Assembly: GCF_011386835.1 (NCBI RefSeq)
Contig: NC_088806.1
Coordinates: 26,474,001-26,538,000 of the forward strand
DNA length: 64,000 nt
DNA from: Chrysemys picta bellii
Lineage: Eukaryota
Direction: 5' to 3'
The notes beneath the pieces are model-generated. The model saw only the letters and a list, made by a program, of their open reading frames with translations, was not told where the DNA came from and ran no database searches. The position numbers and the translations under genes were made by a program. Shown here piece by piece: positions 1-32,149 of this stretch; the first letter of the stretch is position 1, and each line of letters starts with the position of its first letter.

Positions 1-2165
1 ACCCACCCACTGGGATGACACGTCTGTAGCAGCTTCCTATAGAACCAGTCTCTTTGAGGGGATTTGAAGCCCAGAGTGCTCTGTTGTCCCTGAGATTCTG
101 GCCATCTTGGGTCATTACACAGGAGCTGTCCAGTGTGGGTAATTCCATTCTGCCTCCCTAAATCCTGCCCAGCGGTTTCACTGGATTCTCCTTCACTCCT
201 CTCCTCAACTGTTGTGTGGTGTTACTGGGTGCTTTTTAAACAGCTGCTGCTTCCCACCTCAGAGGTGGCTGCATTTCAGTGGTGGGTAAATAACCCCTTC
301 AAAGTGCTTTGGGATTGAGGATGAAAAAAATCACCATATCAGAAAGAGGCTGGAGCCAAGACCTTGGAGGCAAACTCCTCCAAACAGCCAGATTCCATGG
401 CTTGAGCACATCCTTCTGCCATGGGCAGGGAAGGTAGGTACCGGGGAAGAGGTTACTGCAGTTTATACAGCCACAGGAAGTGACACAACTTCCTCCCCTT
501 CAAGTTCCTGTCTAGTGGTTTGCGCTACACTCTCTATCAAGCTACAACCCCACATGGATGCTCAAAATAGAAACAGCGGGGAAGGGCCTGTCACTCCACT
601 CCCCACAGATGGGCTGGGTTGGCACAGAGAAAGACTTGTCGTTGTTATTCATAGTTTGTATTGGCCCAGTCCCGGCCCAGGACCCCACTGTGCGAGGCAC
701 TGTACAAACACAGAACAGAAAGACGGTCTCTGCCCAAGGTGGGGGAATCTCCACAGTCCCAGGGGTTTAGCAGAGACTTCCACAAGAGCCATGTGATTGG
801 AACCCCACACAGCCCTCTGGAAACATGCCCCCAGGGGGTCATTTAAATATAAATTTAGATATCACAGCTGGAGAGTCAAATTCAGCAACGTTCACCAGCT
901 GTGCATGGATCCTACTGCGCAAGGGCTGGAAGTGTGACACCTGACTATGGCATCCTGACCTTGCTGCGCTAAGCGCTCAAAATTTACCTGTATCTCCCCC
1001 TTCTCCTGGCCACAAGCACATCCTAGAACTGAAACACGCCAGCACAGACAGCCTCAGCAGCCTTGGAAGAGACTCCACAGCCTCTCCCCCAGGCAGTGCC
1101 AGAGATGTCTGGGGCATTGATTTCTGACACCAAGAACCACCAAGGTGGAAAATTATCACCTGTGGGAGCAGGGAACTGATGCTTTCAACACACATCCCTG
1201 CCCCAGGACATGGCAAACTCCAAGGATTATAAGCTCAGCCATCCCTGATGGGCCCTTGCTCCCCTCCTCACCACCTTCGGCTAGGGGGTGAACGTGTCAG
1301 TTGGAGCACCGAAGGGTGGTTCGATCTTGATTTCTGGGTGATGGGTGCTAGGATCGGCAACCAGCTCCCATCTCCTCTCCTGTTCCTATTCCAACCCCTC
1401 CTTCCTACCCCGCTAGCCCCAGCTCATCAGCCCCGCAACAGCTGCAGAATCCAGGGAGCGCCCTGACCCCACACCCCTCCCCTGGCTGTCCACCGCCTGT
1501 AGGAGCCAACTCAAAATCACCGCTCTTATTTTAAACACCCTTGCACGGGCTCGCTCCCACCATTTGTCGTCTTCTTTTTCCTCCCCTCCCACCTCCCTCC
1601 TGTCATCCAGTTCTGTCTCTGGTGGGTACAGGCACCTCTTGGATTTCCTTAACGAAGCACTGCACTTGCATTTAACATAGAGAAGAGTTTCCAGGGAATA
1701 AGAGACCTAAACCACCATCTAACCAACTTAGAGCCAGAGCCCTTTGCTTCTGCAGCACAGGGCTGCCCCCAGGCTCAGCCACAGATGCAGCATAGAACAT
1801 TAGTTGCAACAAAGCAATGGGTATTTTTTTCTCTCCCTCACATTCTACCCAATAGGAATACAAGCAACCCACAGGGGCCTCTACGCTAGCTCATACATGC
1901 CACAACAGTTAACCCTTCAGTTACCAGATTAAAATAAAACAGTGCAAAATGCATATCCTAACAGTCCCTTTGCCACTGCAGGGGCAAGAGTCTTCTCCTC
2001 TGCAACTCCTGTGTCTCCTCAAGATGCTGATTCATGTGATTTCTTTTCAAATCTCTCCCCTCCTGGCTAGATCTCTCCATTCCCTGGCCCCAGGAACACA
2101 ACTGCCAGGAAAGATGCTACACTCACAGGACCGCTGTGCCCTCACTGGGGGCTGCCATGCCCTAC

Positions 2166-2394
2166 CTCTCTTTCTCCACCAGGAGCCCTCACGGACGGAG
2201 TAGGACAGGTCAACGAACTCGATGTCCACGGCCGAACGCTTGGGCAGGTGCGAGAACCGCTGCGCCTCTGTGATGTGATTCTCCACCTTCTTCAGGTGGG
2301 TGGTCAGGAGAGGCGCGTCCTGGGAGCCAGCATTGCACACGGAGTCCTCCAAAGCGACGGAGACGCAGGTTGGGTCAATCCCCTTCTCAGCCAT
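2166..2394 (-). CDS. ABCG4: ABCG4 first coding exon (N-terminus MAEKGIDP...SYSVREGSWWRKR-G); later exons lie outside the window to the left
   Basis: LTTHLKKVENHITEAQRFSHLPKRSAVDIEFVDLSYSVREG matches the remembered human ABCG4 N-terminus almost exactly. Acceptor ctccag at 2404, GCC-ATG-G Kozak at 2394, phase-1 donor AG|GTAGG at 2166/2165. Confidence 0.95.

Positions 2395-9182: not shown

Positions 9183-9222
<40 letters not shown>
9183..9222. repeat. (CA)20 microsatellite
   Basis: Read directly. Confidence 0.97.
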
Positions 9223-9226
<4 letters not shown>

Positions 9227-12200
9227 GCTGGAGAGAATAATCCGTTGCTTCTTCCTTTGTGCATTTCCAGGGTTGGAGTGGAGATGGGGTTACACTGAGC
9301 TCTAGGAAGATTCCCCTCGGGAGCAAGAGGCTGCTTCCTGCTGGAGCCAGCATAATGCGAATGGAGAGGAACCTGTGTGGCTAAAAGCCTTCGCCGCCCA
9401 CTGGAACTGCTGAATATTTATTCCTACTGGAAATGAAAGGAGAGGAGAAATCTAGGCAGCTCGGAGTGACTCTCTGCCTGGATGAGAAGCGCCTGCGGCA
9501 GCGGGTTGTGTTTGTGCTGCCTGCAGTCGATAAAATAGCTCATCTGGTCAGATGATGGATGTTATACAAAGGGCTTAGGCAATAGTGGCCCGTCCATCAA
9601 CCCAACCCACGGCTTAGCTGGCCGTAGCTCACCTAGGGGCAGCAGCGAGGGCCCCAGCGCCCGCCAGCTAAACCCAACTTATTGCTGGTCTGTTGTGATG
9701 GGGGATTGGCATAAGGTCTATGCCCTGGATGGATGTTAGGGCACAAACAACACATGTAATTGCTAACCACAGCCCTGCCCCCAACCCCACACAGACTACA
9801 CGGCTCCTGAGCTGACCTGGTCTCTCCCTCCAGCAACGGGACCAGAGGGGAAGAAGCTCTCCGCTCTGGCTTGGGCCCATAGGTTGCAGGGCTGGCCCTG
9901 TATCAGGTTCAGTGGATCCTCGAGGCACGGATTGCGTTGGCAGACAGGTATCTCTCCATGCCCTAAGCTGAGGGAGAAGGTGCTGGTGCGATTTAGGGGG
10001 AGGGATTGGTCCATTTCTTTCCCGCTGAGCCCCAGACAGAGATCTAGGGACCCAAGAGGGTTCCCTTTCTCTCACCCCTTCATTCCCGGCAGGATGCCCC
10101 TTGCCGCAGTCTCACTCTTCCTCCATCCTGGTGGTGCACAGGTTTCATGCCAGGTTACAGATGGATGAGGCCCATCAACTCCCACCCCAAGGGGAGCCAG
10201 GCCAGGACCGTTCACAGGACAGCTCATACATCTGGGCTTTGGCCAGTCCCGCTTAAACAATTCCCACAGGCTGACAGGGTCATTGTCAAGCCCTCTCGCC
10301 CACCCTCCCTGCAGCTCTAACTCTTACTAGCCACTGCCACTGGGGCCAAGACCCAGCACTGCCTCATCTCTGGCCTTGGCTCATTGAGATGCTGTCCAGA
10401 CACAACGCTGTGTTCTCTGGACCACCTGAGCCCCGGGGGCTGCAGCCCAGGCTGTGCTGTATTCTCAGAGGGCCTGGGGTTTGTTCAGCCCCAGCATTGC
10501 ATACTCCCTGCCCCCATGCTGCAGTCACAGACCCATGCAGTTATGTTCTCCCCCCGCCTCAGCCCCTTCAATGTAGTCATTTCTCAGGTGATTTGCTATA
10601 AGAATAGAACCCAAGGCCTGAGCCCTCCTTTGCCAGCCCAGCCTCCCAGCTGGACCAGCTCAGAGAGCTTCTTTTTCCTCCTGGTGACTAGCTCCCCATC
10701 CCCACCATAGCCCAGCACAGGTCACTTACCCAAGCTGCTCCGCTGTTCAGAGCTCCAGCCCCAGAGCAGATCTGTCCCAGCGTCGGCTGCCCACTTGCTA
10801 GGCTGGGAGCACCTACTAAAGTGCCTTGGAAGTAACTAGGTTAGGCAGCTGGGGGACAAGCTCGGTGTGTGCGCCTGTAGCTTTAAATTCTCTACCTGTC
10901 ACTTGTGCATGCTCACAGCCTCCTCCTCTGGCAGGGAGGAGGGGATGCTGCTGCTACTGCAGTGAGGTTACTTGCAGTCAAACTCCAACCACTGCTGCTC
11001 AGTTCCATTGCCTTGGAAAAACCTGCCATCCTTCCCAGCCCCCTCCCCTTCCTGCAGAGGCCGGGGCAGGTGGGGGCAGCAGCAGGAGGAGATACTGGGG
11101 TGAAATAACTCTCCTCGTCACAGCTATTTTCAGAATCACACTGGTTCCCTCCCGCCCTCGCCCCCCAATGTTTGCACATGACAAACAAGAATAAGAACAG
11201 AGCTGCTGGTTCTTAGTCCCCCGCGGTGGTGGCGGCTTCTAGGGAGCTGAGGTTGGCCAACCTGTTCCACTGGGACCGCTGCTGCTGGACTCCTCGGCAG
11301 TTCCAACAGAGATAAGGGGCTGGTCTGAGCAGCATTGCACAGGCCCGAGAACTTCCCCCAGTGCCTCCTGCATGGAGCCCAATAGCCAGCAGCTGGTTGT
11401 TGCTCACAAGATGCCCATCCTGAGTTCTAGCTCTCCATTGTAGGTCCTTACCTGCCGCCAGCCCACTAGTATCTGAGCACCTCACACTCTTTAGCATATT
11501 GATCCCCTCCATCCCCTCGGCCTGCCATGAGATAGGGCAGCACTCTTTGAGAGCAACAAAGGTAAAAGGACTCTAGTTATTATCCACATGGGAAACTGAG
11601 GCACAGAGGGATTAAGAGACTTGTCTGAGGTCACAGTCTGTAGTGGAGCAGGGAACTGAACGCAGGTCTCCTAAGTCCTAGGCTACAGTGCCAGCCACTA
11701 TCCATCCTTCCTCCCAGTTAAACGGGGCTACTCACTGTTAACATAGTCTAGTAGGGAGCCCCACCTCACACTCCGCAGGACAAGCTGCTCTCCAACTAGT
11801 AGGGATTGGGATGAGACCTTGCAGGTTATTGCACGTCCATCTAGCTGGGGCTTTCTTGCACCTGCCTCTAAAGTGCTAGTGGTTGGCTTTGGTTGGAGCT
11901 GGGATAGGGGGCTAAATGAACCATAGGTCTCCTGCTTTCTGGCTGGAGAGGAGAGTCGACAGAGCTGAAAAACCCTGGAACCCACAGGGTCAAATCCGGC
12001 AGCATCCATCCTTCGCCCTTCCCCGCTGGATACACTGAGGTCTGTGCAGTTACTGGAGGCTATGAACTCTCCCCTTTGCAAGATCCCTGCCCTAGTGGCC
12101 TAACTTCCTCCTCCCCCACACTCTTGGGGAGGGCACTGGCTCTCCCAGAGCTGGCTGCATTTCACAGGGTCTGGGTTTGTAAGCAAAGGTGCTGCATGGA

Positions 12201-13651
12201 GAATATTTTTGCCCATCTAAATCCTCTTTTCCCCAGAGATGAGCGAGTAGAGCATCTCCACTGTACAGCTGGGGGGATCTCCAGCTCAGACAGGGAGTGA
12301 CCGGTCCAAGGTCACAGCTGGAACCAGCACATTTCTTTTACGCAGGCAGCAGGCCAGGCATAACTGGGGTGCAGCGGGCATAGGGCTGAACGGCATGTGC
12401 AGATTTGTTTGGATGGGAGAGTTGGTGCACAGTCGGGCTGGGTGCAAGGGGGTACATAGGCAAGTTGGGTGGTAACCCACCGGGGATGGGATTTATAACA
12501 AGCACTTGTGTCTGTGGAAAGTCAGGGGAGGGTCTGTTGCCTTCATCTCCTTAAGGAGAGGCCAATTTCCCTCTTCGCAATGCTGCTGCAGAGGGTGATG
12601 TAAAAGGAAACCTGCCTTTATAGCTAAATCCCATGCTGCTCATTGCAATGAACGGGAGCTCAGCCATCACTTCCATGGGATAAAGCACTGACCTTTGGAG
12701 AGGGGAAACTGGGTTCAGCAGAACCCCCTCCCGCTGCTTAGCTGGGATGCAAACCATCCACCCACTCAGTGGGAGCAGGCTGAGCCAGCTGGAGAATCAG
12801 GATGGAGCAGTAGCTGGGACAGGTCCTCCAGGTGCTGACGCTGACCCCAAAGAGGAGCAGCCCATAGACTCGCTGGAGATGGAAGGTGGTAGAGAAGCAG
12901 GCTCAGGGTAAAGAACAACCTCCAGCCTCACCTGTGGAGGGACCGAGGAGGGGAATTGAGATTCCCCTTTAACAAGAGAAGAGCACTGGGGGCTACAGGC
13001 ACCGCCTTGCACGGTCTGTGGGACATGTTCTGTGTGCAAGCCCAATCACCAGCCGGGCTTCTCTCTTGTTGGCGCCCTCAGGGACTCTTCGGCCATAGCA
13101 ACTGCCTTAGCTGCCTTTACCGGCTGAGTTCACCCATAAGCCTGCCCAAAGCTGAAATCAGCAGAGCTAGCAGTGTGGGCACAGAGCATGCGGCTCTGCA
13201 TTAACCGTCTCCATCAATTAGCCTCATGCCTCCACCAGCTGTAGCAATGAGGAGCTCAGGCTCCAGAACCTACAGGAGAGGGGTGAACACGTGACCTGGG
13301 GAGGAGAGAGAGGAATACCTCGGAGTGGCAGCTGGTGAGTATCAACACCTAAGAAGGAATAGCACCTTCTTAGGTCACCTCCTGGGTGCAAGGAGCTACC
13401 GCTCCCTGGAAGCCCTGTGAACCTGCACCCAATACACTAGCCCTGGACTCAGGCTCCTGGCTTTGGTCCTGTTAGATTCACAAATTAAATTCACAGTGAA
13501 CACAATGCTCTGGAGATACCTGGACTAACAGCAGGCGACAGCCAGGGGAGAGGACGCTGGTTATCCTCATTTGGTGCTGCACGCTACTGGCCAAACTGAG
13601 AACTGCCACCTTGGTCAGAATCCAAACTGCTCCCTGGCCAGCACAGCTCAC

Positions 13652-13998: not shown

Positions 13999-14117
13999 TG
14001 GAGGAGAGATGGGGCTTCTGAACACAGGGACTTAAATGGGTGGAGTGTGGACGGAAGCCAGAGGGTGAGAAAACGCCTCCAACAACATCACTGGAACACT
14101 AGTCACCTCTAGACAGA

Positions 14118-14123
14118 TTTATT
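14118..14123 (-). terminator. Candidate polyadenylation signal (AATAAA) of the unnamed gene
   Basis: tttatt on the + strand downstream of the predicted stop codon. Confidence 0.5.
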
Positions 14124-14870
14124 GGAGTGATGGTCACAGGCTTGGAGCCAGTGGGCAGGAGCAGCATTTGCTATACACAGCATTTAATCCTCACCTTCCC
14201 CATGCCTACCCCACACGTGGCCAGGAGGGAGAATTTCACTGATCCTTTTGTGTCCCACAGACCCTCCCCACCGGCTAGGGAGAGCATTTGACAGAGGCTG
14301 CTGGGTAGCCAGGGAGTAGCATGGCACCACAGCAAAGCAGGCAAGGAAAGGGATTCCCTTCAACTGCCTTCCATCCCCCTGCGTCAGAAGAGGAAACTGG
14401 TGCCTAATCCCACATTAGGGCAGGACCAACCCTTTCCCCCACCTAGAACAGAGCTGTGGAGTCCTTGACTCCCATTCCTGTTCTTGGAACACTGGTCCCT
14501 TGCCCCCACAGTGTAACCCGCTGCAGAGCAGGGAGATGACTGTATATACCCATCGCCCTATGTGCTTGTTTGGAACAAAGCAGGGTGCAAAGGGTTAAGG
14601 TATGGGGGAGGCAGTCCTTTCCTCTGCAGATGCTGCACCCCAACAAGACAGGCTGGCAAATGGTTCCAGCCCAGGAGACAGACACAACCATGCACTTCCA
14701 CGAGCACATTGCCAAGAGTGTGATAGGAACAGACGGATGGCCCGATTGGGAGAGAGGCACAGTATGGTAGCCTATTGCGCAGTGAGCGTCAGGCTGGCTG
14801 CTGTCCCTCCTGGGACGGAGCTCCCCTTCACAGCAGAACAGCACCCCACGAATCCATCCGCCCCAGATCT

Positions 14871-14884
14871 CTACCCGGAGGAAG
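14871..14884 (-). CDS. Unnamed secreted protein, predicted last coding exon (SSSG-stop)
   Basis: Acceptor tgtgttctcgttacag at 14885; phase 1 gives T|CT TCC TCC GGG TAG; AATAAA follows about 750 nt downstream. Read-through of exon 4 (CCK-stop) is an alternative ending. Confidence 0.55.
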
Positions 14885-15501
14885 CTGTAACGAGAACACA
14901 TTCAGACAATGGGCTGTTTGATGTTAGATTATCCTGACCCTCACCCTCCCACGTGCCCCATGTCAAGTCAAGGGTGCCACGCGAGCGCATCTGGACTGGC
15001 ACGCGACTAGCTTCTGCTCCTTGCCCCCCCTCTGCTCCATGGGCCAGCGAAGAGCAGCAGAGCGAAACTCACTTTCCTGCTCTGATCATGGAGCCAACTG
15101 CAAAACAAAAGTCGCCAATTGGGGAGTAACGCCAGCGCAGACAACAGAGTCATTCTGCATTACACAAGGCACAAAACGGACAAGCATTAGCCCCTTCCAT
15201 AGTGAGATCAGATTACTTAGATACCGCCCTCAGGGGCGCTCTGGAAAGGGCATGCCTCTCTGGGGTGGAACGTGGCAACTGAAAGCCGCCTGCACCAACA
15301 ATGCACCAGAGTTTAGGACAAGAGGTGAAGAAAGAAATTGACTAATTCTGTGGTCACAAACAGACCAGCCAAACCACACCCGTGCGGTGTCAGGCAGAAA
15401 ACCCAGGACCTTTAGGACCAAAGAACACCGGGGTTGACTACTACAGCTAAAGGAGAATCTCCATCAGAAGCAGCACATTAGGGCTTTTACTCTATGGGGA
15501 G

Positions 15502-15520
15502 TAGCCACTAGGGGGTGCCA
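15502..15520 (+). promoter_or_regulatory. CTCF-like motif TAGCCACTAGGGGGTGCCA
   Basis: Close match to the CTCF core CCACYAGGGGGCGC, with one CpG-to-TpG type change. Confidence 0.55.
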
Positions 15521-15673
15521 TGATCACACATGCACAGGGGAGCAAGTCCAATACATTCCACCCAGCACAGGGCAGCAATTGTGTTGCAATAGGATGGGAG
15601 CAGCAAGGAAGTCCCATCAGGTTGTCTAGGGAGGCAGCTCCCTCTGACTGCTGGACAGGGAGAAGTCACTTAC

Positions 15674-15877
15674 AGCAGGGGATGTAGCAGTCACACTCGC
15701 AGAAGTCACAGCGCGCGAACCAGCGGGTCCAGCCCCACTGCTTGGTGACGCAGTTGGAGATCTTGATGCAGCCGTGTCTGAGGAAGGCCCCGAGGTGAGC
15801 CTTGTCCGTGCAAGTGGAGGAGCAGCTGCCATCGATGTCCCGCTCGTTAATCTCAATCCGGCCCCGCAGGCATATCC
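15674..15877 (-). CDS. Unnamed secreted protein, exon 4: 10-Cys module ICLRGRIEINERDIDGSCSSTCTDKAHLGAFLRHGCIKISNCVTKQWGWTRWFARCDFCECDCYIPC
   Basis: 204-nt phase 1-1 exon with NAGNAG acceptor (cagcag, 15883-15878) and perfect donor T|GTAAGT; GC3-rich codons. It has no ATG of its own in this frame, so the ORF track missed it. Confidence 0.85.
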
Positions 15878-16455
15878 CTGCTGGGGAGAGACAGCAGCCC
15901 TGTTACCCCGGGGCTGGGGGGAGGCACTGAGAACAGAGCCTGGGAGTTATTAGCATGCGGCTGGGCATGGTTACCAGAGCAATGGGCTGGTCTCTCAGGG
16001 CTGATGAGGCATCAGGCTGCCAATGACACCAGCACCCCGGGTTCCAATAACCTGCCCTGCAGCCTTTTAGCTCACAGGTCCCCAAGCCGGGCAGGCCCAG
16101 CACATTCTCCAGAGCTTGCAACACCCCCAAGGGAGCGAGGTAAAGCTGATGGTGCAGCCCCAGGCTGGGATAGGAGAGCGACACTCCACTCTCCCCCTGC
16201 TCCTGACTGCAGAGGGGTGGGGGAGCAGAGGTATTTCCTCCATTAGCCCCCTCCCCGCCACACATCAGGGATGTCTGAACAGAGCTCACCCAGTGCAGCC
16301 AGACCTGCAGACCACGCTGTCTCCCATGTGGAAAACTGACAAATAAGGGGCACTCCAGCCACCGCTGTGATACAGCCACCTCTGGGGTGGAACATTAGCT
16401 CCTCCCAATCCTACCCGTTTTACTGCCCATCGGTGCTGCACGGCGCAGTACTCAC

Positions 16456-16623
16456 GGAGGCAGGTGGGTTTAGGTGTCCAGTGGCCATCGGACTGGCAAG
16501 CACTGGCCGGGTCCCCCACCAGCAGGAAGCCGGGCCGGCAGCCGTAGCGCACCACAGAGCCCACCCACCAGTCGTTGCCGTAGACCATGGAATTGAAGTC
16601 TGCCTCTGGCCGCCCGCAGTTCA
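16456..16623 (-). CDS. Unnamed secreted protein, exon 3: sushi/CCP domain VNCGRPEADFNSMVYGNDWWVGSVVRYGCRPGFLLVGDPASACQSDGHWTPKPTCL
   Basis: 168-nt phase 1-1 exon (acceptor tttctcttctcag, donor C|GTGAGT); canonical CCP pattern C..P / G..V.Y.C..GF.L.G / C..DG.W / P.C. Confidence 0.92.
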
Positions 16624-17279
16624 CTGAGAAGAGAAAGGTCCCCGGTGGACGGTGCAGGTTGGAAGTGTGAAGGTATCGCCACCACCCCAGAGACCAAAGG
16701 GGCACCAGAAAGCAGCATGCCATGGGTACATGCCTGGCATCATTGGGGTGCCAAGGGCTGCTGGCATAATTCCACAGCCCCAGAAAGATGCCAAGGGAAC
16801 ATACCAGATCCGGGGGGGGGGGGCATGCTGGGCATAGGGTCTGGATCCCCAAGAGATGGCAATAGCATACGCTATGGATGACAAGAGTATATAGCTCCTG
16901 GGATCCGTGATGGCCAGGGTATCTGCTACCAGTGCTGGTAAACTGCTCGGGGTACGTGACATGGAACCTAAATGAATGCTAGGATGCCAGGAGCTGTAGG
17001 TAGATGCTCCAGATCCCAGAGAGGATCCATTGGTCCATCTCCCGGATGCCAGGAGGCCAAGGATACAGAGATGTTGCATCAACCCCCCCAGCCTGCTCCA
17101 GGACACAGTCTTGTTGCATTAACCTTGTCAACACCTTGTGATGCCAACAGCTGCTGTAATTCCTTGCCAAGGGGCCCCTCAGGAAATGACCCATACTTCT
17201 CGCTCCCCAGATGCCCCCAAAATCCTCCAGGCCAAAGACAGCTTTTGATGGAGAGAAGAAGGGCTTTCAGGGTCATATA

Positions 17280-17370
17280 GAGAGAGATGTATGTATATGT
17301 TGTGTGTATATAAAAACTATACACACACACAAATATATATATATATATATATACACACATACACACACAA
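17280..17370. repeat. Compound (GA)/(TA)/(CA) microsatellite
   Basis: Read directly. Confidence 0.9.
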
Positions 17371-17980
17371 AACAAACAGGTTTGAATTGAACCAAAACCA
17401 TTGTTTTTTTTTTTTTAATCTCATCAAATAATAAAACAATTCATTTCAAATCAACCAAAATGTTTTGGGTTGACTTGATGTGAAATTTTTTCATTTCAAT
17501 TCACCATTTGACATGTCCACCCCCCACCCCACCCTTTACAATTTTTTAAAAAAATTGGACAAATTTGAGAACCAAATGCCACGTTGAAACAAACGAACAA
17601 CCCCTTTAAACAAAGCATTTCAACTTCAAACAAATCTGGGTTTTCCCCCGTGGAAGCTATTCATTGAGTTCAACCGAAATTTGCAGATCGTTCCAGAGAC
17701 ACACACAAAATTCATGTTTTCAGCCAAATTTCTATTTGTCAAAATAAATGCACCAGTGGCTGCTACAGGAGACAGCCTCCCACACATGAAAATCCCCTGC
17801 CTCCGGGGGACTTGGGACAGCGGCTGCCATAGTTGGTCTCCGTCTCCCCTCCTCACTCACAGCCACCCCCCCCCCCTCCAATTCAGGCATGTCTGAGTCT
17901 GTTTGGGTTGAGATCAGTCCCGCACAGTCCCTCCCCCACCAAGCTCAGCCTCTCCTTTCTCTCCCCCTGGCACCGTGTAC

Positions 17981-18115
17981 CTCGACAGAAGGATTTGTAT
18001 CCCAACCAGCAGCAGCTGCCGTTCCCACACTGGCTCCTCTTCAGCTCCTTGTGTTTCCCTTTGCAGCCCCCCATGCAGATGGGGGCCGTGCCAGACCAGT
18101 ACGTGTCCAAGCTTC
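17981..18115 (-). CDS. Unnamed secreted protein, exon 2: 6-Cys module SLDTYWSGTAPICMGGCKGKHKELKRSQCGNGSCCWLGYKSFCR
   Basis: 135-nt phase 1-1 exon; acceptor ttctgcccctccag, donor GAG|GTACAC; open frame with an even Cys count. Confidence 0.85.
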
Positions 18116-18295
18116 CTGGAGGGGCAGAACAACAGGGAGAGATGGGCTGGGGCCTCTCTCCTCTCCCAGGTCCCAGGGCACCCCCACGATTCTGTCCCCA
18201 CCCCCAACCCCCATTCTCTTTCCCAGCTGGGCCAGCAGCAGCACTGAGCCTGCCAGGGTGTGTCTACACTGCAGCTGGCGCAAGCCTCCCAGCTC

Positions 18296-18671
18296 CCACC
18301 AAATGAAATTAATGGGCAGCAGGTATAAAACAAATAAAAGGAAGCTCTTCTTCACACAGCGCACAGTCAACCTCTGGAACTCCTTGCCTGAGGAGGTTGT
18401 GAAGGCTAGGACTATAACAGGGTTTAAAAGAGAACTAGATAAATTCATGGCAGTTAAGTCCATTAATGGCTATTAGCCAGGATGGGTAAGGAATGGTGTC
18501 CCTAGCCTCTGTTTGTCAGAGAATGGAGATGGATGGCAGGAGAGAGATCACTTGATGGATACCTGTTAGGTTTACTCCCTCTGGGGCACCTGGCATTGGC
18601 CACTGTTGGCAGACAGGATACTGGGCTGGATGGACCTTTGGTCTGACCCAGTGTGGCCGTTCTTATGTTCT
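18296..18671 (+). mobile_element. CR1 LINE 3' fragment (ORF2 C-terminus plus 3' UTR) in intron 1 of the unnamed gene
   Basis: FFTQRTVNLWNSLPEEVV...FKRELDKFM is a typical CR1 ORF2 end; tail ttcttatgttct. Confidence 0.9.
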
Positions 18672-19741
18672 CAAGCAGGTATTGGGGGCGGTGGGGGACA
18701 CTGAGGCATAGACTAAGGGAATGATTTGCCCAAGGCCACGAGGAGTCATTGGCAGAGCTGGGGATAGAACCCAGGAGCCCTGGCTCCCATGGCATTTATG
18801 GCACATCTGATTGACAGGCCTGAGATCTGATGCCCCCCTCTTTATCCTCCAGAGAGGTGCAGCCCGAGCAGGAGCAGCTCAAACTGATCCTGCCAACAGG
18901 TCTCAGCCCTGCCATGGCATTCCCAGTGGCTTTTCTGACGCTGCCAACAAGGGACTCTCACTGCAGGTGGCACCTGCATTTCCTGGCTGCTTGAGGGACT
19001 GGCAAAGTTGCACCCTGAGAATGGTGCAAGGGTCTGGAAGCAGTGAGTGGTGGGAGTATCGGGGCCCTGCCGAGAGTGCCAACACCAGCAGGTCCAGATC
19101 AGCACCAGAACCTCCCACCCAGCCTGGGGCATGCCAGGGAGATGAGACGGACCCTGGCATCAGACTCTGTTTGGAGAAGCGACTCCTGCCCTCTCCAGTG
19201 ACGGGGAAGTGAAAGAGAAGGAGCACAGAGCTCCTCTGCCCCCGAGGGGCAGGGATGACTCAAGGCTGCCAGCCTTGCCAGACAAAATCTATGGTGGGGA
19301 GTCTGGGATTGACAAGGAGAAATGGCAGGACAGGAATAGTGGATCTTTCCCAGCTCTGGGCAAAGACTGGGGTGGGCACAGTTTCAGTGTGATGCCACCA
19401 TCAGCTTTGTGGTATGGGAGAAGGGGGTGACCTCCCACTGTGCCCTGACACAAAGGGTGGGGTCTGCTTAGAGCATTGCCAGCTCCAGGAGGGTGTCTGA
19501 GAAAGCACAAGCAGCGACCCTCCCCCCCCTTTCCTTGGTGGATCCCAGCAGGACTAGCTCAGCTTCTGGGCCAGGGACTCCGCTCAGACTGCAGAGCTGC
19601 TGCCCTATGACCAAAGCAAAGCTGCTCTTCCCCGCAAGGACACCGACCAGAACTGGCTGGATCCCAACACAGCTGGCTCCCTCCCAGTGGCTCTTGGGCA
19701 CCATACCGTGTGCAGCAAACGCCTCCTGCTCCGTTCCTTAC

Positions 19742-19805
19742 CTTCCTCCTCCTCACCAGAGCCAAACCCAGCCAGCGTGACTAAGATGAGGAGTCCCAGC
19801 TCCAT
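19742..19805 (-). CDS. Unnamed secreted sushi-domain protein, exon 1: signal peptide MELGLLILVTLAGFGSG(EEEEG)
   Basis: ACC-ATG-G Kozak at 19805 (in-frame upstream ATG at 19814); hydrophobic core; two phase-1 donors, TCTG|GTGAGG (19757) and GAAG|GTAAGG (19742), both in frame with exon 2. Confidence 0.75.
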
Positions 19806-21082
19806 GGTGCTCATCGCAGGCCCAGTCCAGTGCCCTCTCCACACGCTGCCCTCCTTCTACGGTTCCCGTCCTTCGCCCACTGGCCTCGGACTCCAGCTTT
19901 CAAAAGACCTGGAGTATTTGCTTTTCCATCTCCCCCTCGCCCAGGGGATGTTGGCCGGGCTGAGCTAGCGGCCAGCAGGGTCTGGCACTGTCCTGACCCA
20001 GCCTTCCCATGGAGGAGGGGAACTTCGCTTCCATCTGCTCAGGACAGAGGCACCTTACAGGTCCGGTAGCTAGGGGAGGGGGGATTGGAGGAAGAGGCTT
20101 CCTTTAATCCCCATTCTCTCTTCCCTGCACATAATCCTCTTGGCAAAGCGATTACCTTTTTGCAGCTTCTGCTGTGGCTGCAGCAATTAAAGACCCCAGA
20201 GGCCACAGTCCCACAGAGGAGCACCAGTAACGTTTCTGACTCGGCCCTACAATATTTCCTGACCTTAGGTTCTATTGGTCCATGCCAGGGACAGGCGGGG
20301 CACTGCCCATATATCCACCTGTGGAGCCCCAGGTTCCTTGACCTGAGTAGTGCCATGGAAAGGAGCTGGAGCCATCCCGGTTCACTGCAGCTCTTGGCAC
20401 AGATTCGGTTCTACCAGGTGCCGGCTGGGCTCTGTTGCCTGGAATGCTCTTGCTGCGAAGGCATCCCTCGGTACAGCTGATCAGAACCAGGTTACGCCAG
20501 GCATACAAAATGGGACACAGCTAGCTGAAAGGTGGAAACTAACCTTTGACCTCTGGGGCACGCACGGGTGCCTCCCTGTCCAGTCCCCTCTCAGCCTGGA
20601 TGCGAGAGCTGAACCTCTATGGAGGCACTGTTCTGCTCTCAAGGGCCATGAGGAGCAGCTCGCTGCATGAGCGCTCAAGGGAATTTAGAGCCAGCTCGGC
20701 AACCTGGAAATCCTCCAGCCATCCATGCCACATTTACAGCATGGGCAGGGCAGGCTTCCCCATGCCTCCTGGCAGCGTGCTTCTCCCCAGCCTTGTGACT
20801 CCACATCTATAGGACACAGTGTCCAGGGCCCATTCACACCTTTGTTCCCTCTGCAGAGGCTACGTGCCAGTTGTGAAGGGGTGTGCACGCACAGTGCCGA
20901 TCTCTGTCTGTAGGGAACCAGACTGAGAAACCCCTTTGACACAGGCCTCCAAACCACTCGAGGATTTTGATCACGACTGTCTGAACTATTTCCACAGGGG
21001 TTGTGTTCCCTGACCACCTCCGCTTGGGAACGCTTTGTCCAACAGACACTCACTCTCCTTCCCACCTCCCCGCTTATACTTA

Positions 21083-24708: not shown

Positions 24709-25231
24709 TCACATAATCTGTATCCCCAGTTCCTCAGCTGTCTTCTGTAGGCGGTCCATGACGTTCTCCTCCGGCTCCACGGCCAGGCCGCCGGGCACCA
24801 CCGCCTGCTCCTCCGAAGGTGCATTGGCCATGACGTAGTACACAGTCTCGTTCTCCCCATGCTCGTTGGTCCTGTTCACCACACGGATGATGGGGCCGAG
24901 CGGGGCGCTGGGCTCTTGGTCTGGCGAGGCCTCAGCTCTCGGGAAGGTGCTTTGCTGAGCTGGGTCAGGGTTGGCAGCAGCATAGACCGGTGGTGGCAGT
25001 GGGGCCACCTGCGATTCCATGTCATTGGCTTCCTCCAGGGAGGCCTCTGCCGGTGGCTCCAGGATGATCCCTTGCAAGTTGCCCTCACCCTCTGTCAGCA
25101 CCACGCACTCCGCCGTGCCATCCAGCAACTCGCCCTGTTTCTCCCGGTCCTTCAGCAGCTGCTCAGTCAGCTCCACGCTTTCATAGCGAACTAGTTGCAG
25201 CCGCATGTAGCCGTCCTCGTGTTCCTTGTAC
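24709..25231 (-). CDS. HINFP: HINFP last coding exon (RYKEHEDGYMRLQLVRYESVELT...ELGIQIM-stop)
   Basis: 523 nt, phase 2, TGA at 24711-24709; the nine exons sum to 1641 nt = 546 aa. Confidence 0.96.
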
Positions 25232-26041
25232 CTGGGCAGGCCAGAGAGAGGGACGGGTGGCAAGGGTTAGAACAAGGCTGGAAGGCAGATGCCTTGTGCA
25301 GTTACCGAGGCAGGACTGACTGCTTGGAGTGCTGCCCAGCATACTAGCACGCCCAGCACCAGGCGATCAGTGGCAGTTGCTACCCCAAGGAGGTTATTTT
25401 GCAGCACTGATATTCCTAAGCGGCAGACACCCCAGCACACAGCGCCCAGTGTGTTAACAAGCAGTGCAGTGGGGGAGGAGATGTTGTCAGGGAGGGTAAA
25501 TCCTTTCATCCCCAGCCCCTAACGGTCAGCTTCTCCTTGTCTCGGCCATGTGCCGTATAGAGGGTTTACATCTCCACTCAGGCCAGGTTTGGTTTCTTTG
25601 TCCTATCCAGTTTCCATGAGCAAATTTGAGAGCCCTCCTTTTAAGCTCTGGAATGTCTGGGGGAGACTGAGGCTTGCTGGAGATTACACCAGATAAGGCG
25701 TCCTCAAAACGTGACTGGGCTTACACTGGGGTGACGCTCTCTCAGGTTGAGGAGAGCTGGATCTGGCTGCAGTCTGAGCCTGCAAATTCTAGAAGCATCC
25801 CAGTAGATCCAGCTGCATTCGAGTGGCTACTACACAGCAGCCCTAGTCTCTGATCTGCCACTGGAGGCTACTATCTAGGTACTGATAGAGCCCCTATCAC
25901 CATAGCATCAGAGAACCTAGGAGCAACACCCCACCTCCGCGTGACTGTTCCCAGTGAGCCTGCTTGCCAGTCCCCTACTGCCCCCTGTGGCTCGAGAGAG
26001 GTAGTGAGCTCTGCACATAGGAGAGGCTGGAGGCCCAGTAC

Positions 26042-26166
26042 CTGAAGCGAGGATGGCCCGAGGGCCACTTGAACTGGTGTTTCTTCCTTAGGTGCACGGT
26101 GAGGTTGTTCCCACGCGTGAAGCACTTGTCACAGATGTGGCACTTGTACCGGGGTTCCGAATCACC
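26042..26166 (-). CDS. HINFP: HINFP coding exon 8 ([41 protein letters not shown])
   Basis: 125 nt, phase 0 to 2. Confidence 0.97.
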
Positions 26167-26423
26167 CTGGGGAGGGAGCGGGAAGAAAGGAAGGATGTAA
26201 GTGTCATGGGATTCAAACCTCGTGGGAAGCCAGGCTTTCCAACAGGAACAAACACCCTACAAGTTTTACAGCAAACATCATTATGGCAAAAGAGTGGGGG
26301 ACAAGTAACACTTCTGACGGGCTTGGCATTTCCAATCCACGGGATGGAGGGAATCTCATTACCTAGGAGATCCCGTGCCCGGGCTGCTAGTTGTTCGGGA
26401 CTGCTTTGCAAAGTGGCCACAGA

Positions 26424-26500
26424 ATCATAGAAATGTCAGACGGGAAGGGACTTCAGTAGGTCATTTAGTCCAGTCCCCTGCACTGAGGCAGGGCTAAGTA
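26424..26500 (-). mobile_element. CR1 3' end fragment
   Basis: gaatcatagaa...ggaagggac...aggtcat.tagtccagtcccctgc is the reverse complement of a CR1 3' tail. Confidence 0.65.
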
Positions 26501-27309
26501 TTGGAGCCATACCTATGTCTGTAGAAATACAGGTATTAAAATGCTTGGCCCATGCCAGGGAGCAGCAGCAGCAGAACACACGCAGTCAGCCATGCACGGA
26601 GGAACAGGGGCAGGCAGACCCCCACCGGTGCTCCCAAGGGATTAGCCAGGAGGTGATACAAACTGACCGCTCATAAAACTATCACAATTGCCAGGTTAGT
26701 GGATAGTGCCCAAGAATAGAAAACTCCCACTCAAACCCCATGAGCCACCATTTATAGCCAGGAAAAAGCAGGCAAGATGCTAGGCACACATGTTAACACA
26801 CCACAACGCCTAAATTACTGGGTGCGTATGTCCAGTTCTGGTTAGCGTTCTCTGCGTCTTTAGTGTCTTCCATGCAGCGACCTACTACTTGTGTGTCAGG
26901 GCTCACCTACTGTTCAGTACATCTTTGCTAAATGGCCAACACTGAAGAACTGCTGCTCTTCCCGCCCCGGCCCTGTATTGGAAGGGCGAGCAATTCCCTG
27001 TTCCCAGCCAGAGAGCAGAGATCAAGAGAGATCAGACAGCCAGAAGGAAAGTCATGAGAAACCCACTCTCCCCAGATAACTTGTGTTGTGTCAGCCGAGA
27101 ATCAGAACCCGTTTAGCCATTAGCACTGCAGCAGGTGGAGAGAGGAACGGAAAGGACAGAAGAGTCAATTCCTCCCAGAGCTGATGGATACCAAGCATGA
27201 CCATGGACTGTTCCAAATCTATGGGGGGTGGGAATGAAGCGGAGATTTGCGTTAGGGTTTTATGGTCACCTAGAAGGCTAAGGCGGGTTTGGGAGGAAGA
27301 CCGGTCGAG

Positions 27310-27550
27310 TGGAAGTCAGGAGATATGGATTCAATTCCCAGCTCTGCCAGACTCTCTGTATGACTTGGACAAGGCACTTGGTCTCTCTGTGCCTCACTCC
27401 CCCATCTGGCTAGCAGGGAGGAGAGTATTCCCTTCCTCTCACTCTTTATCTAGATTGCAAGCTCTTCAGTGTAGGGCTCATCTCTCATGACGTGTATGTG
27501 CAGCACCTAGCACCCTGGGCCGCAAACTTGCTTGGGGCTTCTCAACATTA
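27310..27550 (+). mobile_element. tRNA/CORE-type SINE (MIR-like)
   Basis: Box-B-like ggattcaattcc, CORE ctctctgtgcctca.t.ccccatct, tail gcacctagcac. Many other copies, e.g. 640-740, 11576-11700, 40915-41110, 41450-41660, 42930-43150, 43745-43960, 44750-44920, 50905-51130, 63600-63910. Confidence 0.75.
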
Positions 27551-27601
27551 TTGCAATATAAACAGTGGGAAAAGCAGCAGATCCCTTGGTTCCCTCCCCA
27601 C

Positions 27602-27740
27602 CTCGTGGACTTTCCTGTAGTGCAGTTTGATGGAGCAGAGGGAGCGCGCAGTGAAGCTGCAGGCTTCGAACTCGCAGCGATAGGCTGGCTCTTTGCTGTG
27701 AGTGTCCAGGTGCTTCCTCAAATCAATGAGATTTTTACAG
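27602..27740 (-). CDS. HINFP: HINFP coding exon 7 ([15 protein letters not shown]...HYRKVHE)
   Basis: 139 nt, phase 2 to 0. Confidence 0.96.
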
Positions 27741-27944
27741 CTGAAAGGAAAGAACGCAGGAATGAAGCCAAATGTGTGAGAGACCCCTATTCTATTCTCC
27801 TCCCTGGCCCATCAGTGCTTCTCTCCCACCCCCAGCCCCTAACAGCCCAGCCACCATCCCTTCCCCCCCCCCCCCAGAACCAAGCCCCACCTCCGAAGCC
27901 CAGACCCACTCCACCCTAGGGAAGTACAATCACAGGGACCCCAC

Positions 27945-28065
27945 CTGTAGTCACAGTAGTCACACTTGAAGGGCCGCTCCTCGCTGTGCCGGAAGCGGAT
28001 GTGGTTGCGCAGGGAGGAGGGCAGCGGGCAGGTCATGTCGCACAAGGGGCACTTGTAGTGGTTTA
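27945..28065 (-). CDS. HINFP: HINFP coding exon 6 ([40 protein letters not shown])
   Basis: 121 nt, phase 1 to 2. Confidence 0.97.
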
Positions 28066-28167
28066 CTGCTCGAGAGAAACGAGAGGGAAGCCCATCACCA
28101 TGGAGTGGGGAGAGGGAACGCACTTGCCAGAGCGACGGCTGGAAGAGAGAGAAGGGCCTTTACTCAC

Positions 28168-28245
28168 CATGGTTCCTCATGTGATCACGCAGCAGCCTCT
28201 CGGTAGCAAACCTCTTGGAGCAGTGGGAGCACTGAAACCTCTGCT
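28168..28245 (-). CDS. HINFP: HINFP coding exon 5 ([26 protein letters not shown])
   Basis: 78 nt, phase 1-1, donor G|GTGAGT. Confidence 0.97.
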
Positions 28246-29069
28246 CTGTAACATTGGGGAAAGGTGGGGGGAGAGAGAAGAGAGTGCACAAAGCGGGAGG
28301 GGAAGGACAGAAAGAACAAAGCAGAGAGAATATAGCACAGATAGCAACACACAGGAGGAAGAGAGTTAGTTATATCAGAGCCAGGAGCCCTTTCTTCTCA
28401 TTCACAGCCACTGACGCTGCCCCTGGCTAGAGAGCCACTGTCTTGCCTTCCAATGAACAGTTCTCCCAGTGCTACCACTGCACGACTCAGGAAGCAACCC
28501 CAGAAGCAATTCTACTGCCTTCAAGGATGATCACAAAAACAAGTCTAACCAGGAATGAGATGCATGGGAGCTGGGAACATACAGGGAGAGCTGGGAATGT
28601 ACACGGGGCCCCTGCAGGGAGCTGAGGGGAGACCAGCAACTCCTTTCACTTTTAGATACAGGCCCAGCCTGCAGCGGAGAATGCACAGCACAGTACTGAC
28701 TCCAGCACCCAGCATGGCACAAAGGAGCTCAAGGAGATTTTTAAATGAATCTAGCACTGGCACAAGGGCCTGACTGCCAGCCTGAGACATTAGTCCCATG
28801 TCCACAGAACAAGAATGGCACTAGATACAGCAAGACAAACCTCCCCCATGCTGCCCCACTCCTGCCTGAGAGGGGAATTCAGTCTCAGTGGCCTATTCAA
28901 GCCGCTGGTCTCTCTGGTGAGCCTGAGAGCCAATCAGTGCCAACACTCACAATGGTCGTGCCCTGCTAATGCCTTGCTCCTAGAACAGAGAGCTACTGAC
29001 AAATCAAATGACCCGGCTAGAAGCAACAGGGTAGATCAGTGACAATCCCACCCCCACTCAGGCACTTAC

Positions 29070-29222
29070 GATCCAGGGCGGTCTGCCGGCGGATGTGGTC
29101 AAAGAACTTGGTGTTGTTGGAGAACATCCCGCCACAGGTAGGACAGGCCACTACCTTCTCCTGCGTGTGGCTGCGCAGGTGTTCCCGCAGCTTACAGCGC
29201 CCTTTGAAGGTGCAGTCGCACT
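29070..29222 (-). CDS. HINFP: HINFP coding exon 4 (C2H2 fingers; [24 protein letters not shown])
   Basis: 153 nt, phase 1-1, donor C|GTAAGT. Confidence 0.97.
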
Positions 29223-30061
29223 CTGAACGCAAGAGGCAGAGACAATGGTTAGCTCCTTGGCAAAGGACCTGACAGCTCCAAGAAACTTTCAGTAGCCCAG
29301 GCAGAGGAAAATGCCTTGCTGCCCCCAATGGAGAGCTAGGCCAGGCATGCTGCAGATATGTAGGAGACCAGATACAGGCCTACATACAGCATAGATCTGT
29401 CATTCCACGGGACACATGAGCAGCCGAGATGATCACGGCCACATGAAAGATAGCAGTTATTGTTAAAGTTAAACTAGCACTTCCCCCGAGATTCTCTGTT
29501 CAGAGACAAGGGCAAGTTCAGAGGCCTTGATACCATCTATTAAATTCCTCAACTGCAATCACCAGGTATTGAGCCCACCCATGGTGGGCAGTTTCCAGTC
29601 AGTTCTCTGACAGGTTGGGAAGTTCTTGGGCAGCTTTACACTTCAGGGACTGAAAACCCCTTAGCAAAGGTAGGAGGGCCGTCTAAGTCAAAAGGGCTGG
29701 GGACTAAGAAGCCAGAATCCCAGGTTATATTCCTCACTCTTACATTGACATACCACGGGCACCCCAGCAAGTTGCCTCTGCATTTTGGTTTCTGTAGCCA
29801 TCCAGTGGGGAAATGGGTGAGGCAAGGCCCAGCTCATTAGTGTTTAGAAAGCCCTTTGAGAGCCTCAGTGGAAAGGTGCTACAGAAGTGCAAAGCCTTGC
29901 TGTTTGTCAGCTGCTCCCCTGCCCCGCCAGGAGAGCTTTCAAGTTCTCACATGTGCAGGGACTGTGTTTTGTTCCGTGTTTGTACAGCACCAAGCACAAT
30001 GAGGTCCTGGTCCATGACTTGGGTTCTTAAGTGCTACAGTAACATAAATAAAATCAAATAC

Positions 30062-30173
30062 CTTTCCAGCCACAAAAGACCACATGGTTCTCCTTCCCAG
30101 CTGCCTTGTATTCTGAACAGAAGCTGTGATCCTCCACATGCCGGTAGAACCATTCAGGGTTATCAAAAGATCT
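30062..30173 (-). CDS. HINFP: HINFP coding exon 3 ([17 protein letters not shown]...FCGWK-G)
   Basis: 112 nt, phase 0 to 1, translated by hand; matches human [13 protein letters not shown]. Confidence 0.96.
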
Positions 30174-30566
30174 CTGTTGGGGGGGGGGGGGAGAGGAGAC
30201 AAAGCCACATGCATACTAGCAGTTCTGGTACAGCTCAACTTTGACAGACCGTTTTCCCTCCTCTCCCTTGGGGCAAACACAGAAAAGCACAATCAGGGCA
30301 TTCAAACTGGTTGCAGTGCTCGTAATGCTGAGACCATCTCCCTAAGCTAGAACTGAGACTTTGTTGGCTTGAACCACGTAAGGCCCTGTCTGTGCCCCCA
30401 CTTGACCTGGGCTGAGTTCTCAAGGGTTTCATCAGAATGACAGCGAATCTCCCAGTTCCCAGGCATTCACTGTGAGAGAATAAACCCCCCTTTTCTCCTG
30501 CTCCCACCTGACTGCACACCCACAGACAGGATTTAGGAGGGCTGATCCCCTCCCTGTTGCTCTCAC

Positions 30567-30793
30567 CTCACAGTACTCCCACAGACACAAGAAGTTTTCC
30601 TGGATCTCAGGGATGATGTTGCGGCTCTGGAAGTCCAGCTGACAGTGGCTCACGTCTGACTGGCTCTGCAAAGCCTGCAGCCCCCACTGCTTCAGCTTAG
30701 TGTGGTAACAGTGGAAGTAAACATGGCGGACCAGGTCTGCTGAGCTCTCTGGGGAGCAGAAGCCACATTCCTGCCACAGACAAGTGTATTCTT
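30567..30793 (-). CDS. HINFP: HINFP coding exon 2 ([13 protein letters not shown]...FLCLWEYCE)
   Basis: [23 protein letters not shown] identical to remembered HINFP; AG/GT boundaries, phase 1 to 0. Confidence 0.97.
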
Positions 30794-31624
30794 CTGCAAC
30801 ACAAATAGGAAACACAGTTACTGACAAATCTGTAGAAAATGAGTGTCTCCCTGTTAAAGCTTAAGTCCCCATAAGCTAGAGATGATGGAAGCTTTCTTCA
30901 TAGCCTTCCCTCCCTGCAACTGGTGGGACCACCTACTTATGGTGAGAGGAGAACTCTCAGCTTCCTACTTGTTCAGTTCTGGACTCTGGCTTATGATCCA
31001 CTACAAAGGCAGCCGAGACCTTGCACTCAAGACAGTCAATATAAACATCAACTATTCACAAAAATAAATCTCCTTAGCTCTGTTAATAGCTCAAGTGTTC
31101 ACAGATCCCAGTCCTGTGCGCCGAATGCTAGACTATGCATCACCCTTTAAAAATATATAGTTAAAGCTGCTAAGCATCTCACTGAGCAGATGTAATTCAA
31201 TAGGTGTAATTGAAGTCACATAATGAAGAAGAATGTAATTTAAGGGTTTGCTATTGTCCCTTACTTCTACAGACAATGAAGGATTGCGGTGTCAGGTAAG
31301 GGAGAACAAAGCCTTCCAAGTTCTTGATACAAAACTGTACTGCACCACAGCCTTCAATCACGACCAGACATTCTAATAGGTTAATTGACAGCAGAGTGCA
31401 CTAGACCCACTGGAAAGTTTATTTTCTTACCCGAACGCAGAACACATTATCACCAGTGGACACTATGGCATCACTCTCACTGGGAAATTCACTATTGAAA
31501 TTTCTCCATGTCTACCAGGAGTGGTTCAGAATAATGAAGGGAGCTTGATGACCCACCTGACGGCTCTTCCAACCCAAGAGTCCAATTTTAGTTATAGTTT
31601 TTAATTGCACTCAGTGTCCCTTAC

Positions 31625-31787
31625 CAAGAGGGTTCATCTCATCCCTATGTTCCCCACGAAGATGCAGCTGCAAATGCTCCGACACATGATCACAAAACTC
31701 CTCCATCTTAGAGGCCACATAGGTGCACATCTCCCATTCACACTGCAGCACCAACTTTTCTTTATTGCCGGCCTTTCCAGGAGGCAT
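31625..31787 (-). CDS. HINFP: HINFP coding exon 1 (MPPGKAGNKEKLVLQCEWEMC...)
   Basis: Homologous to human MPPPGKVPRKENLWLQCEW; acceptor ctctcag at 31805, phase-1 donor G|GTAAGG. Confidence 0.92.
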
Positions 31788-32149
31788 GGTCCGACCTTTA
31801 GGCACTGAGAGAAGATGTTACAAAGACACAAAACGTTTCTCACGCCCATTCAGTCACTAAGAAAAACATCACCACCAAAAAAGATGCCCTCTACAAAACC
31901 ATGGGGCTTCCTAGATGCAGCGTAGGTCTCGGTACTATAACGAGGGTAGAACTATAACTGCTGTCAGCTCAGTGGGGGAAAATAACCACAAACACAACGC
32001 TGTATTTTGCAGATACAACCCCTGCCCTATGGAGAATCGGGGGGGGGGGGGGTGGCCAGCCACATCAAGAATAAGATGCAACCCAAGTAGGAGCCCCAGG
32101 AAAATCCAGACCCCCCCGCACGAGCAGAGAATGACGCTACGCCAGAGGA

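Follow-up and report, generated by a model that had tools for sequence, protein, structure and literature searches.

An unnamed gene next to HINFP in Chrysemys picta bellii encodes a predicted secreted CCP protein whose C-terminal module recurs in invertebrate pore-forming proteins

Which gene occupies the minus strand between HINFP and ABCG4 in the turtle Chrysemys picta bellii, and what might its product do? This question arose from a reading of 64,000 nucleotides of genomic DNA (NCBI RefSeq assembly GCF_011386835.1, contig NC_088806.1, positions 26,474,001 to 26,538,000), referred to here as the window; all coordinates are window positions. The sequence-only reading had proposed an unnamed five-exon gene for a small secreted protein with 20 cysteines. 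We are practically certain that this is a real, conserved gene for a secreted protein. Its product, which is unnamed and mislabelled in databases, contains a Sushi/complement control protein (CCP) domain flanked by two modules absent from Pfam. The best overall explanation, in which we have good confidence, is that of an intact, independently transcribed gene that represents in the turtle an orthologue group of bony vertebrates, as yet unnamed, at the HINFP-ABCG4 locus and whose product may act as a binding protein; this judgement weighs the gene call over the mechanism, and the binding role itself is put forward tentatively.

Scripted joining of exons 1 to 5 yielded one open reading frame (ORF), in which introns 1 to 4 all lie in phase 1. 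The donors are all GT (gtaagg, gtacac, gtgagt, gtaagt) and the acceptors all AG, preceded by a pyrimidine tract, and the exon coordinates given by the sequence-only reading proved exact. The ORF comprises 198 amino acids when started at the ATG at 19814 and 195 amino acids when started at that at 19805, whose context (ACCATGG) is the better of the two; use of the alternative donor at 19757 makes the ORF 15 nucleotides shorter (193 or 190 amino acids). The proposed layout of one module per phase 1-1 exon was likewise borne out, with 6, 4, and 10 cysteines in exons 2, 3, and 4, respectively, and 20 in total. Isoforms that lack the Sushi exon and keep the frame are annotated for Mauremys (P0002) and Zonotrichia (P0138); the phase 1-1 introns on either side of this exon make such skipping possible. 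The short introns 2 and 3 are often retained in frame in bird and Logan models. Several turtle database models begin within intron 2 or misframe exon 2, and for this reason the five-exon model is better than some of those deposited.

In order to obtain information on transcription, we used a word search, which found several sequencing runs, probably of RNA, that each contain 8-16% of the sampled words of the 5.8-kb stretch, a share that fits the exons alone. Contigs of four of these runs (X1, X3, X6, and X9, from four turtle organisms) were aligned to positions 14100-19900. The junction 15876/7|16455/6 (intron 3) is skipped by contigs of all four runs, the junction 14884|15674 (intron 4) by contigs of X1, X3, and X9, and the junction 16623|17981 (intron 2) by contigs of X1, X6, and X9. 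The skipped intervals end in CT..AC on the plus strand, corresponding to GT..AG for a minus-strand gene. A single X3 contig of 654 letters joins the 3' untranslated region (UTR) to exons 5, 4, and 3, and contigs of X1, X3, and X9 span 14129-14884, stopping just short of the AATAAA at 14123-14118. Since the contigs skip exactly these intervals, introns 2, 3, and 4 are confirmed in several species; spliced sequences, which the sequence-only reading had named as a check, were present for these three introns as contigs from four organisms. Exon 1 is covered by X1 contigs (19741-19840 and 19589-19770), one of which stops at 19741, the exon edge, while another continues unspliced into intron 1. This putative intron rests on the gene model of a related turtle, Mauremys reevesii, whose RefSeq model (P0002) uses the donor type at 19742 together with the start type at 19814.

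We searched for relatives of the protein in two ways, namely with exon 4 alone against a library of 1.84 billion proteins (HMMER; 64 representatives) and with the duck orthologue as query of a word-indexed search (118 homologous proteins). Full orthologues were found in other turtles (Mauremys, Gopherus, Chelonoidis, Macrochelys, Carettochelys), in further sauropsids (Alligator, lizards including Varanus, Lacerta, Podarcis, Phrynosoma, and others, and many birds), and in fishes (coelacanth, bichir, sturgeon, and many teleosts). The window protein is identical to the Mauremys isoform P0002 at 134 of 141 positions (95%), to Varanus at 157 of 188 (84%), to coelacanth at 137 of 170 (81%), and to sturgeon at 146 of 187 (78%). 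Each of the 20 cysteines is conserved in at least 90% of the 51 sequences of alignment A2, and the SSSG-type C-terminal tail is also present in orthologues. No mammal or amphibian occurred among the named hits of the 118 homologues or among about 30 looked-up representatives of the exon 4 search. The earlier suggestion of a non-mammalian vertebrate gene holds in so far as the named hits comprise only fish, coelacanth, and sauropsids; the search results agree with a loss in mammals but do not prove it. In Oryzias latipes, two family members (P0104 and P0121) lie on the same 32-Mb contig and are 58% and 49% identical to the duck query, which suggests a teleost duplicate.

Among the coding differences to other turtles that were listed (at least 14), 10 were synonymous third-position changes and three codons changed the residue, a rough but clear sign of purifying selection among turtles. 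Codon 159 (198-amino acid numbering; 15777-15778) reads AGA (Arg) in the window and AAC (Asn) elsewhere; Asn at this position was found in contigs of three other turtle organisms and in other sauropsid orthologues. Arg159 is a lineage-specific replacement in a loop of the 10-Cys module. This pattern bears on the earlier suggestion that the protein serves innate defence or belongs to the secretions of egg or skin, which was not supported: an identity of about 80% between turtle and coelacanth and about 10 synonymous against 3 replacement changes speak for a conserved partner and against an immune protein engaged in an arms race.

To call the gene unseen or new would overstate the case. Models of it from the RefSeq and GenBank pipelines exist for dozens of species, under wrong names and often with the first exons absent or wrongly read; it is true, however, that a curated name is lacking and that no literature on it was found. 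Its automatic names include SVEP1-like, CSMD1/2/3-like, CR1/CR2-like, C4BP, PAMR1-like, seizure 6-like, lev-9, and even "ABCG4". As these names differ between clear orthologues, they are best-hit artefacts. One UniProt entry (Haplochromis) bears the zebrafish-style label Si:ch211-117m20.4, and other records are LOC120375701 (Mauremys reevesii) and LOC106602873 (Salmo salar); a literature search for this label and the two LOC identifiers returned no paper. The window gene shares with this orthologue group the order of signal peptide, 6-Cys, Sushi, and 10-Cys modules, the 20 cysteines, and the module-per-exon structure, and in duck also the neighbouring genes. No essential difference was seen that would set it apart from the group, of which it is a member; truncation, retained introns, or fusion to HINFP affect many of the database models.

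The N-terminus begins with a short polar stretch, followed by a 13-residue hydrophobic core, small residues, and an acidic stretch, and by inspection it looks like a cleavable signal peptide. Inspection of the whole protein revealed no later hydrophobic or membrane segment, and the chain ends four residues past the last cysteine. The mature product is predicted to be a secreted protein of about 175 amino acids that consists of three disulfide-bonded modules and carries neither an enzyme domain nor a membrane anchor. Exon 2 follows the pattern DTYWSGTAP.C..GC...H.EL....CG...CCW.GYKS.C and gave no Pfam match up to E 10 and no match to PDB sequences. Homologue searches detected it in orthologues only; a search restricted to this region was limited by its word index, and its result is not evidence of absence elsewhere. 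A trefoil- or hevein-like nature of exon 2, considered in view of its C-x4-CC-W spacing, was dropped because the cysteine spacing differs and no profile matched. Exon 3 is a Pfam Sushi domain (PF00084; 41.6 bits against a gathering score of 20.7, E 1.7e-10, profile positions 1-56 of 56) with four cysteines and the conserved Trp in HWTPKP, and both of its flanking introns are in phase 1. It contains the stretch GNDWWVGSVVRY, which is strongly conserved (at least 90% in the 51-sequence alignment), and among solved chains it comes closest to the CCP modules of CR1, CR2, and factor H. Exon 4, like exon 2, had no Pfam match up to E 10 and no PDB sequence match. Pfam searches of the turtle exons gave no match to Aerolysin or ETX_MTX2, and none to VWA, EGF, pentraxin, or CUB in any exon or in the orthologue P0014.

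The search with exon 4 alone led beyond vertebrates. This exon matches invertebrate proteins at E values from 1e-15 to 1e-5, for example in Owenia (1.8e-15) and Holothuria (6.1e-11). As a local iterative search showed, the module nearly always occurs in these proteins as a tandem pair near the N-terminus. Behind the pair, five of them (P0027, P0036, which is the "Natterin-4" of Holothuria leucospilota, P0037, P0040, and P0048) have a Pfam Aerolysin domain that reaches or exceeds the gathering score, and P0017, P0041, P0054, and P0064 have one that scores below it. In the annelid Owenia fusiformis (P0016; UniProt name sphingomyelin phosphodiesterase), the pair precedes an Exo_endo_phos domain. 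Some of the module-bearing invertebrate proteins also contain C-type lectin, kringle, or FN2 modules, and the module pair was found in large nemertean proteins as well. A search with the Holothuria module pair returned only itself, a result that reflects the limit of the word index and is not evidence of absence.

We compared 100 sequences of the exon 4-type module (alignment A1) by counting cysteines per column. A core of eight cysteines (C18, C22, C36, C42, C56, C59, C61, and C63) is kept in 94-100% of the invertebrate copies, together with E11, G48-W49, and the motif C56..C59.C61.C63. The first and last cysteines of the turtle module are found in vertebrates only, and this pair is probably an added staple; exon 4 as a whole therefore consists of the 8-Cys core common to the invertebrate proteins and a vertebrate-specific terminal pair. 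The core family has no entry in Pfam, and no link of the exon 4 module to invertebrate pore-forming proteins was found in the literature searchable here.

The sequence-only reading had named AlphaFold and Foldseek among its checks; for exon 4, no known fold emerged. The AlphaFold2 model of exon 4 computed with A1 is beta-rich, with a predicted local distance difference test (pLDDT) score of 71. Foldseek against the PDB returned no known fold (best E 4.4), the only real match among the AlphaFold DB clusters was an orthologue, and an exhaustive VIA-align comparison reached a best Z of 3.5, with nothing convincing. Sequence searches of the PDB with exons 2 and 4 and with the A1 profile found nothing either, a hit to eL22 at E 1.3 being noise. 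A shape search of the ESM Atlas with exon 4 recovered the module's own family and an arthropod DUF4803 cluster (template-modelling score 0.72 over 65 residues, root-mean-square deviation 2.4). Several invertebrate copies match DUF4803 (PF16061) weakly at profile positions of about 176-236 of 255, with 9-12 bits against a cut-off of 27, and the window module did not match this profile. Homology of the module to DUF4803 is only a weak lead and unproven. DUF4803 proteins are secreted arthropod proteins that include the parasitoid-wasp venom factors IDDF-1/2 (PMC11777187). DUF4803 itself has no known biochemical function. Feature searches of the ESM Atlas returned only generic Cys-rich toxin and defensin clusters for exon 4 (0.76-0.79), and nothing for exon 2 or the Sushi-less isoform P0002. 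In a full-length model of the Varanus orthologue, only the Sushi domain is resolved (pLDDT 80-85).

How might such a protein act? In aerolysin-family toxins, N-terminal accessory domains bind the receptor or target. Because the 8-Cys core precedes pore-forming domains and a membrane-lipid enzyme and stands beside binding modules, it most likely binds a target on the cell surface. By analogy, we tentatively propose that the turtle protein would be secreted and act extracellularly as a non-catalytic binder or adaptor that carries no effector part of its own. Its C-terminal module would recognise a target on the cell surface or in the matrix (a glycan, lipid, or protein), while the CCP and 6-Cys modules could supply a second contact. 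Slow evolution suggests that the partner would be a conserved endogenous one, such as a receptor, a matrix component, or a defined glycan or lipid, and not a target on a pathogen that itself evolves fast.

Known systems agree with this layout in part. The invertebrate natterin-like proteins of the aerolysin type, for example P0036, share the 8-Cys core and its motifs (E values down to 1e-15); in contrast to their two N-terminal copies, the turtle protein has a single C-terminal copy with the extra terminal cysteine pair, and since it contains no pore-forming domain, it is unable to form pores itself. Owenia P0016 has two N-terminal copies of the same module and a catalytic Exo_endo_phos domain that the turtle protein lacks. 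With the CCP proteins CR1, CR2, factor H, C4BP, and beta2-glycoprotein I, the turtle protein has in common a typical CCP on a phase 1-1 exon; unlike them, it is far smaller, lies at another locus, and places a single CCP between two unrelated cysteine modules. The VWA, EGF, pentraxin, and CUB domains of SVEP1 and CSMD are absent from it.

Several observations weigh against this interpretation of the locus. No junction across intron 1 was found among the contig joints listed for the four runs, and the "RNA" type of these runs is a guess of the search tool, although intron-skipping contigs are otherwise hard to explain. Read-through models that include HINFP exist in two species. The structural predictions are uneven, with the full-length Varanus model failing for exons 2 and 4 (pLDDT 33-45, exon 2 at about 33) and the exon 4 model itself being only moderate at 71. 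Concerning the mechanism, the association of the module with other domains is only an argument by analogy, and folding, oligomerisation, or inhibition are other tasks that the module could have.

A different use of the same evidence is to see in the protein a separate molecule that would partner or regulate pore-forming or membrane-acting proteins: as a targeting subunit or as a decoy, it would work in trans, either together with the aerolysin-like proteins of vertebrates or against those of microbes. Frog beta-gamma-CAT, in which a small trefoil subunit partners an aerolysin-like protein, provides a comparison, and at least nine invertebrate representatives carry the 8-Cys core in one chain with an aerolysin-type domain. 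Mammals are not known to have aerolysin-like proteins, which other vertebrates possess, and the gene was likewise not seen in mammals in the search that gave 118 homologues. However, amphibians yielded no orthologue either, though they possess aerolysin-like proteins, the very high conservation would be unusual for an immune component, and fusions of the module with an enzyme and with other architectures exist as well. We therefore consider this role unlikely. A broader proposal takes the 8-Cys core to be a domain, not yet described, that guides animal beta-pore-forming toxins and membrane-acting enzymes to their targets, and bony vertebrates would have taken one copy of this domain by exon shuffling into a secreted protein that binds the same class of membrane or glycan, or acts in trans with vertebrate aerolysin-like proteins, and that was later lost in mammals; this scenario is speculative and rather improbable.

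The other alternatives concern the identity of the gene. The automatic names (CR1/CR2-like, C4BP, SVEP1-like, CSMD-like) would make it a complement regulator or a member of a large CCP family, and the CCP exon indeed matches CR1, CR2, and factor H best among solved chains, besides which the pipelines assigned those names. Yet the protein has a single CCP instead of an array and lacks VWA, EGF, pentraxin, and CUB domains as well as a membrane anchor and an oligomerisation tail, its locus is HINFP-ABCG4 and not the regulator-of-complement cluster, and the names vary by species for clear orthologues. Architecture and locus largely refute this identity, to which we give very little credence. We give still less to the view that the exons are alternative 3' exons of HINFP: two database models (Carettochelys "HINFP isoform X4" and Goodea) do fuse both, and the two genes lie on the same strand about 5 kb apart, but a start codon, a signal-peptide exon, and a 6-Cys exon belong to the gene itself and are kept from fish to birds, contigs cover exon 1, separate genes are called in duck, and it would be biologically senseless for a nuclear zinc-finger protein to end in a secreted, disulfide-rich part. 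On account of the conserved signal-peptide and 6-Cys exons and the separate gene calls, we rejected it. Finally, several turtle models miss or misread exons 1 and 2, which is the one weak point in favour of a chance ORF or a decaying pseudogene. Spliced contigs, an intact frame, conserved cysteines, mostly synonymous substitutions, and orthologues across about 400 million years refute this, and its probability is close to nil. What stays is an intact, independently transcribed gene with a tentatively assigned binding role.

Table 1 Positions of the gene's exons, its 3' UTR, and its neighbours in the window
Feature	Position	Strand	Remarks
Exon 1, coding part	19742..19814	minus	Putative signal peptide and short acidic stretch EEEEG; start at 19814 or 19805; donor 19742, alternative donor 19757
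Exon 2	17981..18115	minus	6-Cys module
Exon 3	16456..16623	minus	Single Sushi/CCP domain, 4 Cys
Exon 4	15674..15877	minus	10-Cys module
Exon 5, coding part	14871..14884	minus	Final residues SSSG and TAG stop (14873-14871)
3' UTR, about 770 nucleotides	14100..14870	minus	AATAAA at 14123-14118; from sequence and contig coverage
HINFP coding exons (upstream neighbour)	25135..31805	minus	tblastn with the HINFP part of P0003; 8 exons, 64-100% identity
Early ABCG4-type N-terminal coding exon (downstream neighbour)	2090..2300 (approx.), near 2223	minus	Motif scan

The neighbourhood of the gene is consistent with the position between HINFP and ABCG4 that had been read from the sequence: HINFP exons lie upstream, an ABCG4-type exon is a lead downstream (Table 1), and duck shows the same order. 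The translated stretch near 2223 agrees with the N-terminus of ABCG4, a lead that comes from the motif scan and not from a database test. A Pfam search of ten long ORFs within positions 1-13000 gave no match, and the ABCG4 assignment, itself a lead, rests on this one motif-found exon and on synteny in other species. At the duck locus, a 533-amino acid C2H2 zinc-finger gene, the orthologue, and a 685-amino acid ABC_tran/ABC2_membrane gene follow one another on one strand. In conger eel, an ABCG-type gene (ABC_tran and ABC2_membrane) lies 10 kb from the orthologue on the opposite strand. With the window protein as query, tblastn recovered the same one-module-per-exon blocks at both the duck and the eel loci. 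The fused models mentioned above, Carettochelys "HINFP isoform X4" (P0003) and the Goodea model (P0039), attach the Sushi and 10-Cys exons directly to zinc-finger exons of HINFP; the corresponding places in the window are 25135 (end of an HINFP exon) and 16627 (Sushi exon). These models are probably due to read-through or annotation error, and they show once more that the two genes are adjacent.

Further features of the window were noted along the way. Within intron 1, the interval 18174-18950 reached a summed contig depth in the thousands in all four runs, with many loose ends at 18296, 18576, 18671, and 18753. This dispersed repeat is probably an interspersed element that is abundant in turtles and forms part of the transcripts of many genes; neither a signal of derivation from transfer RNA nor a tandem array was found in it. 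Intron 2 contains a mixed TG/TA/CA simple-sequence stretch at 17292-17379, which the contig alignment treated as a repeat and in which Tandem Repeats Finder detected no array at its default score. At about 34000, the G+C content falls sharply from about 0.52-0.58 to about 0.37-0.43 and stays low to the end of the window, which looks like a compositional boundary upstream of HINFP. A G+C-rich block (0.60-0.65) at 2001-6000 surrounds and lies upstream of the ABCG4-type exon near 2223 and is probably the CpG-island promoter region of ABCG4.

Overall, an identity of about 80% between coelacanth or sturgeon and turtles or birds reflects a constraint typical of hormones, morphogens, and core matrix components, and the non-appearance of the gene in mammals may explain the lack of attention to it. 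In practice, the analysis yields a correct five-exon model and a reason to rename dozens of mislabelled records. As zebrafish and chicken both carry the gene, its function is directly testable. The C-terminal module defines a domain family that is missing from Pfam, and since it connects a vertebrate protein with the N-terminal parts of pore-forming toxins of invertebrates, this family may reveal how such toxins choose their targets.

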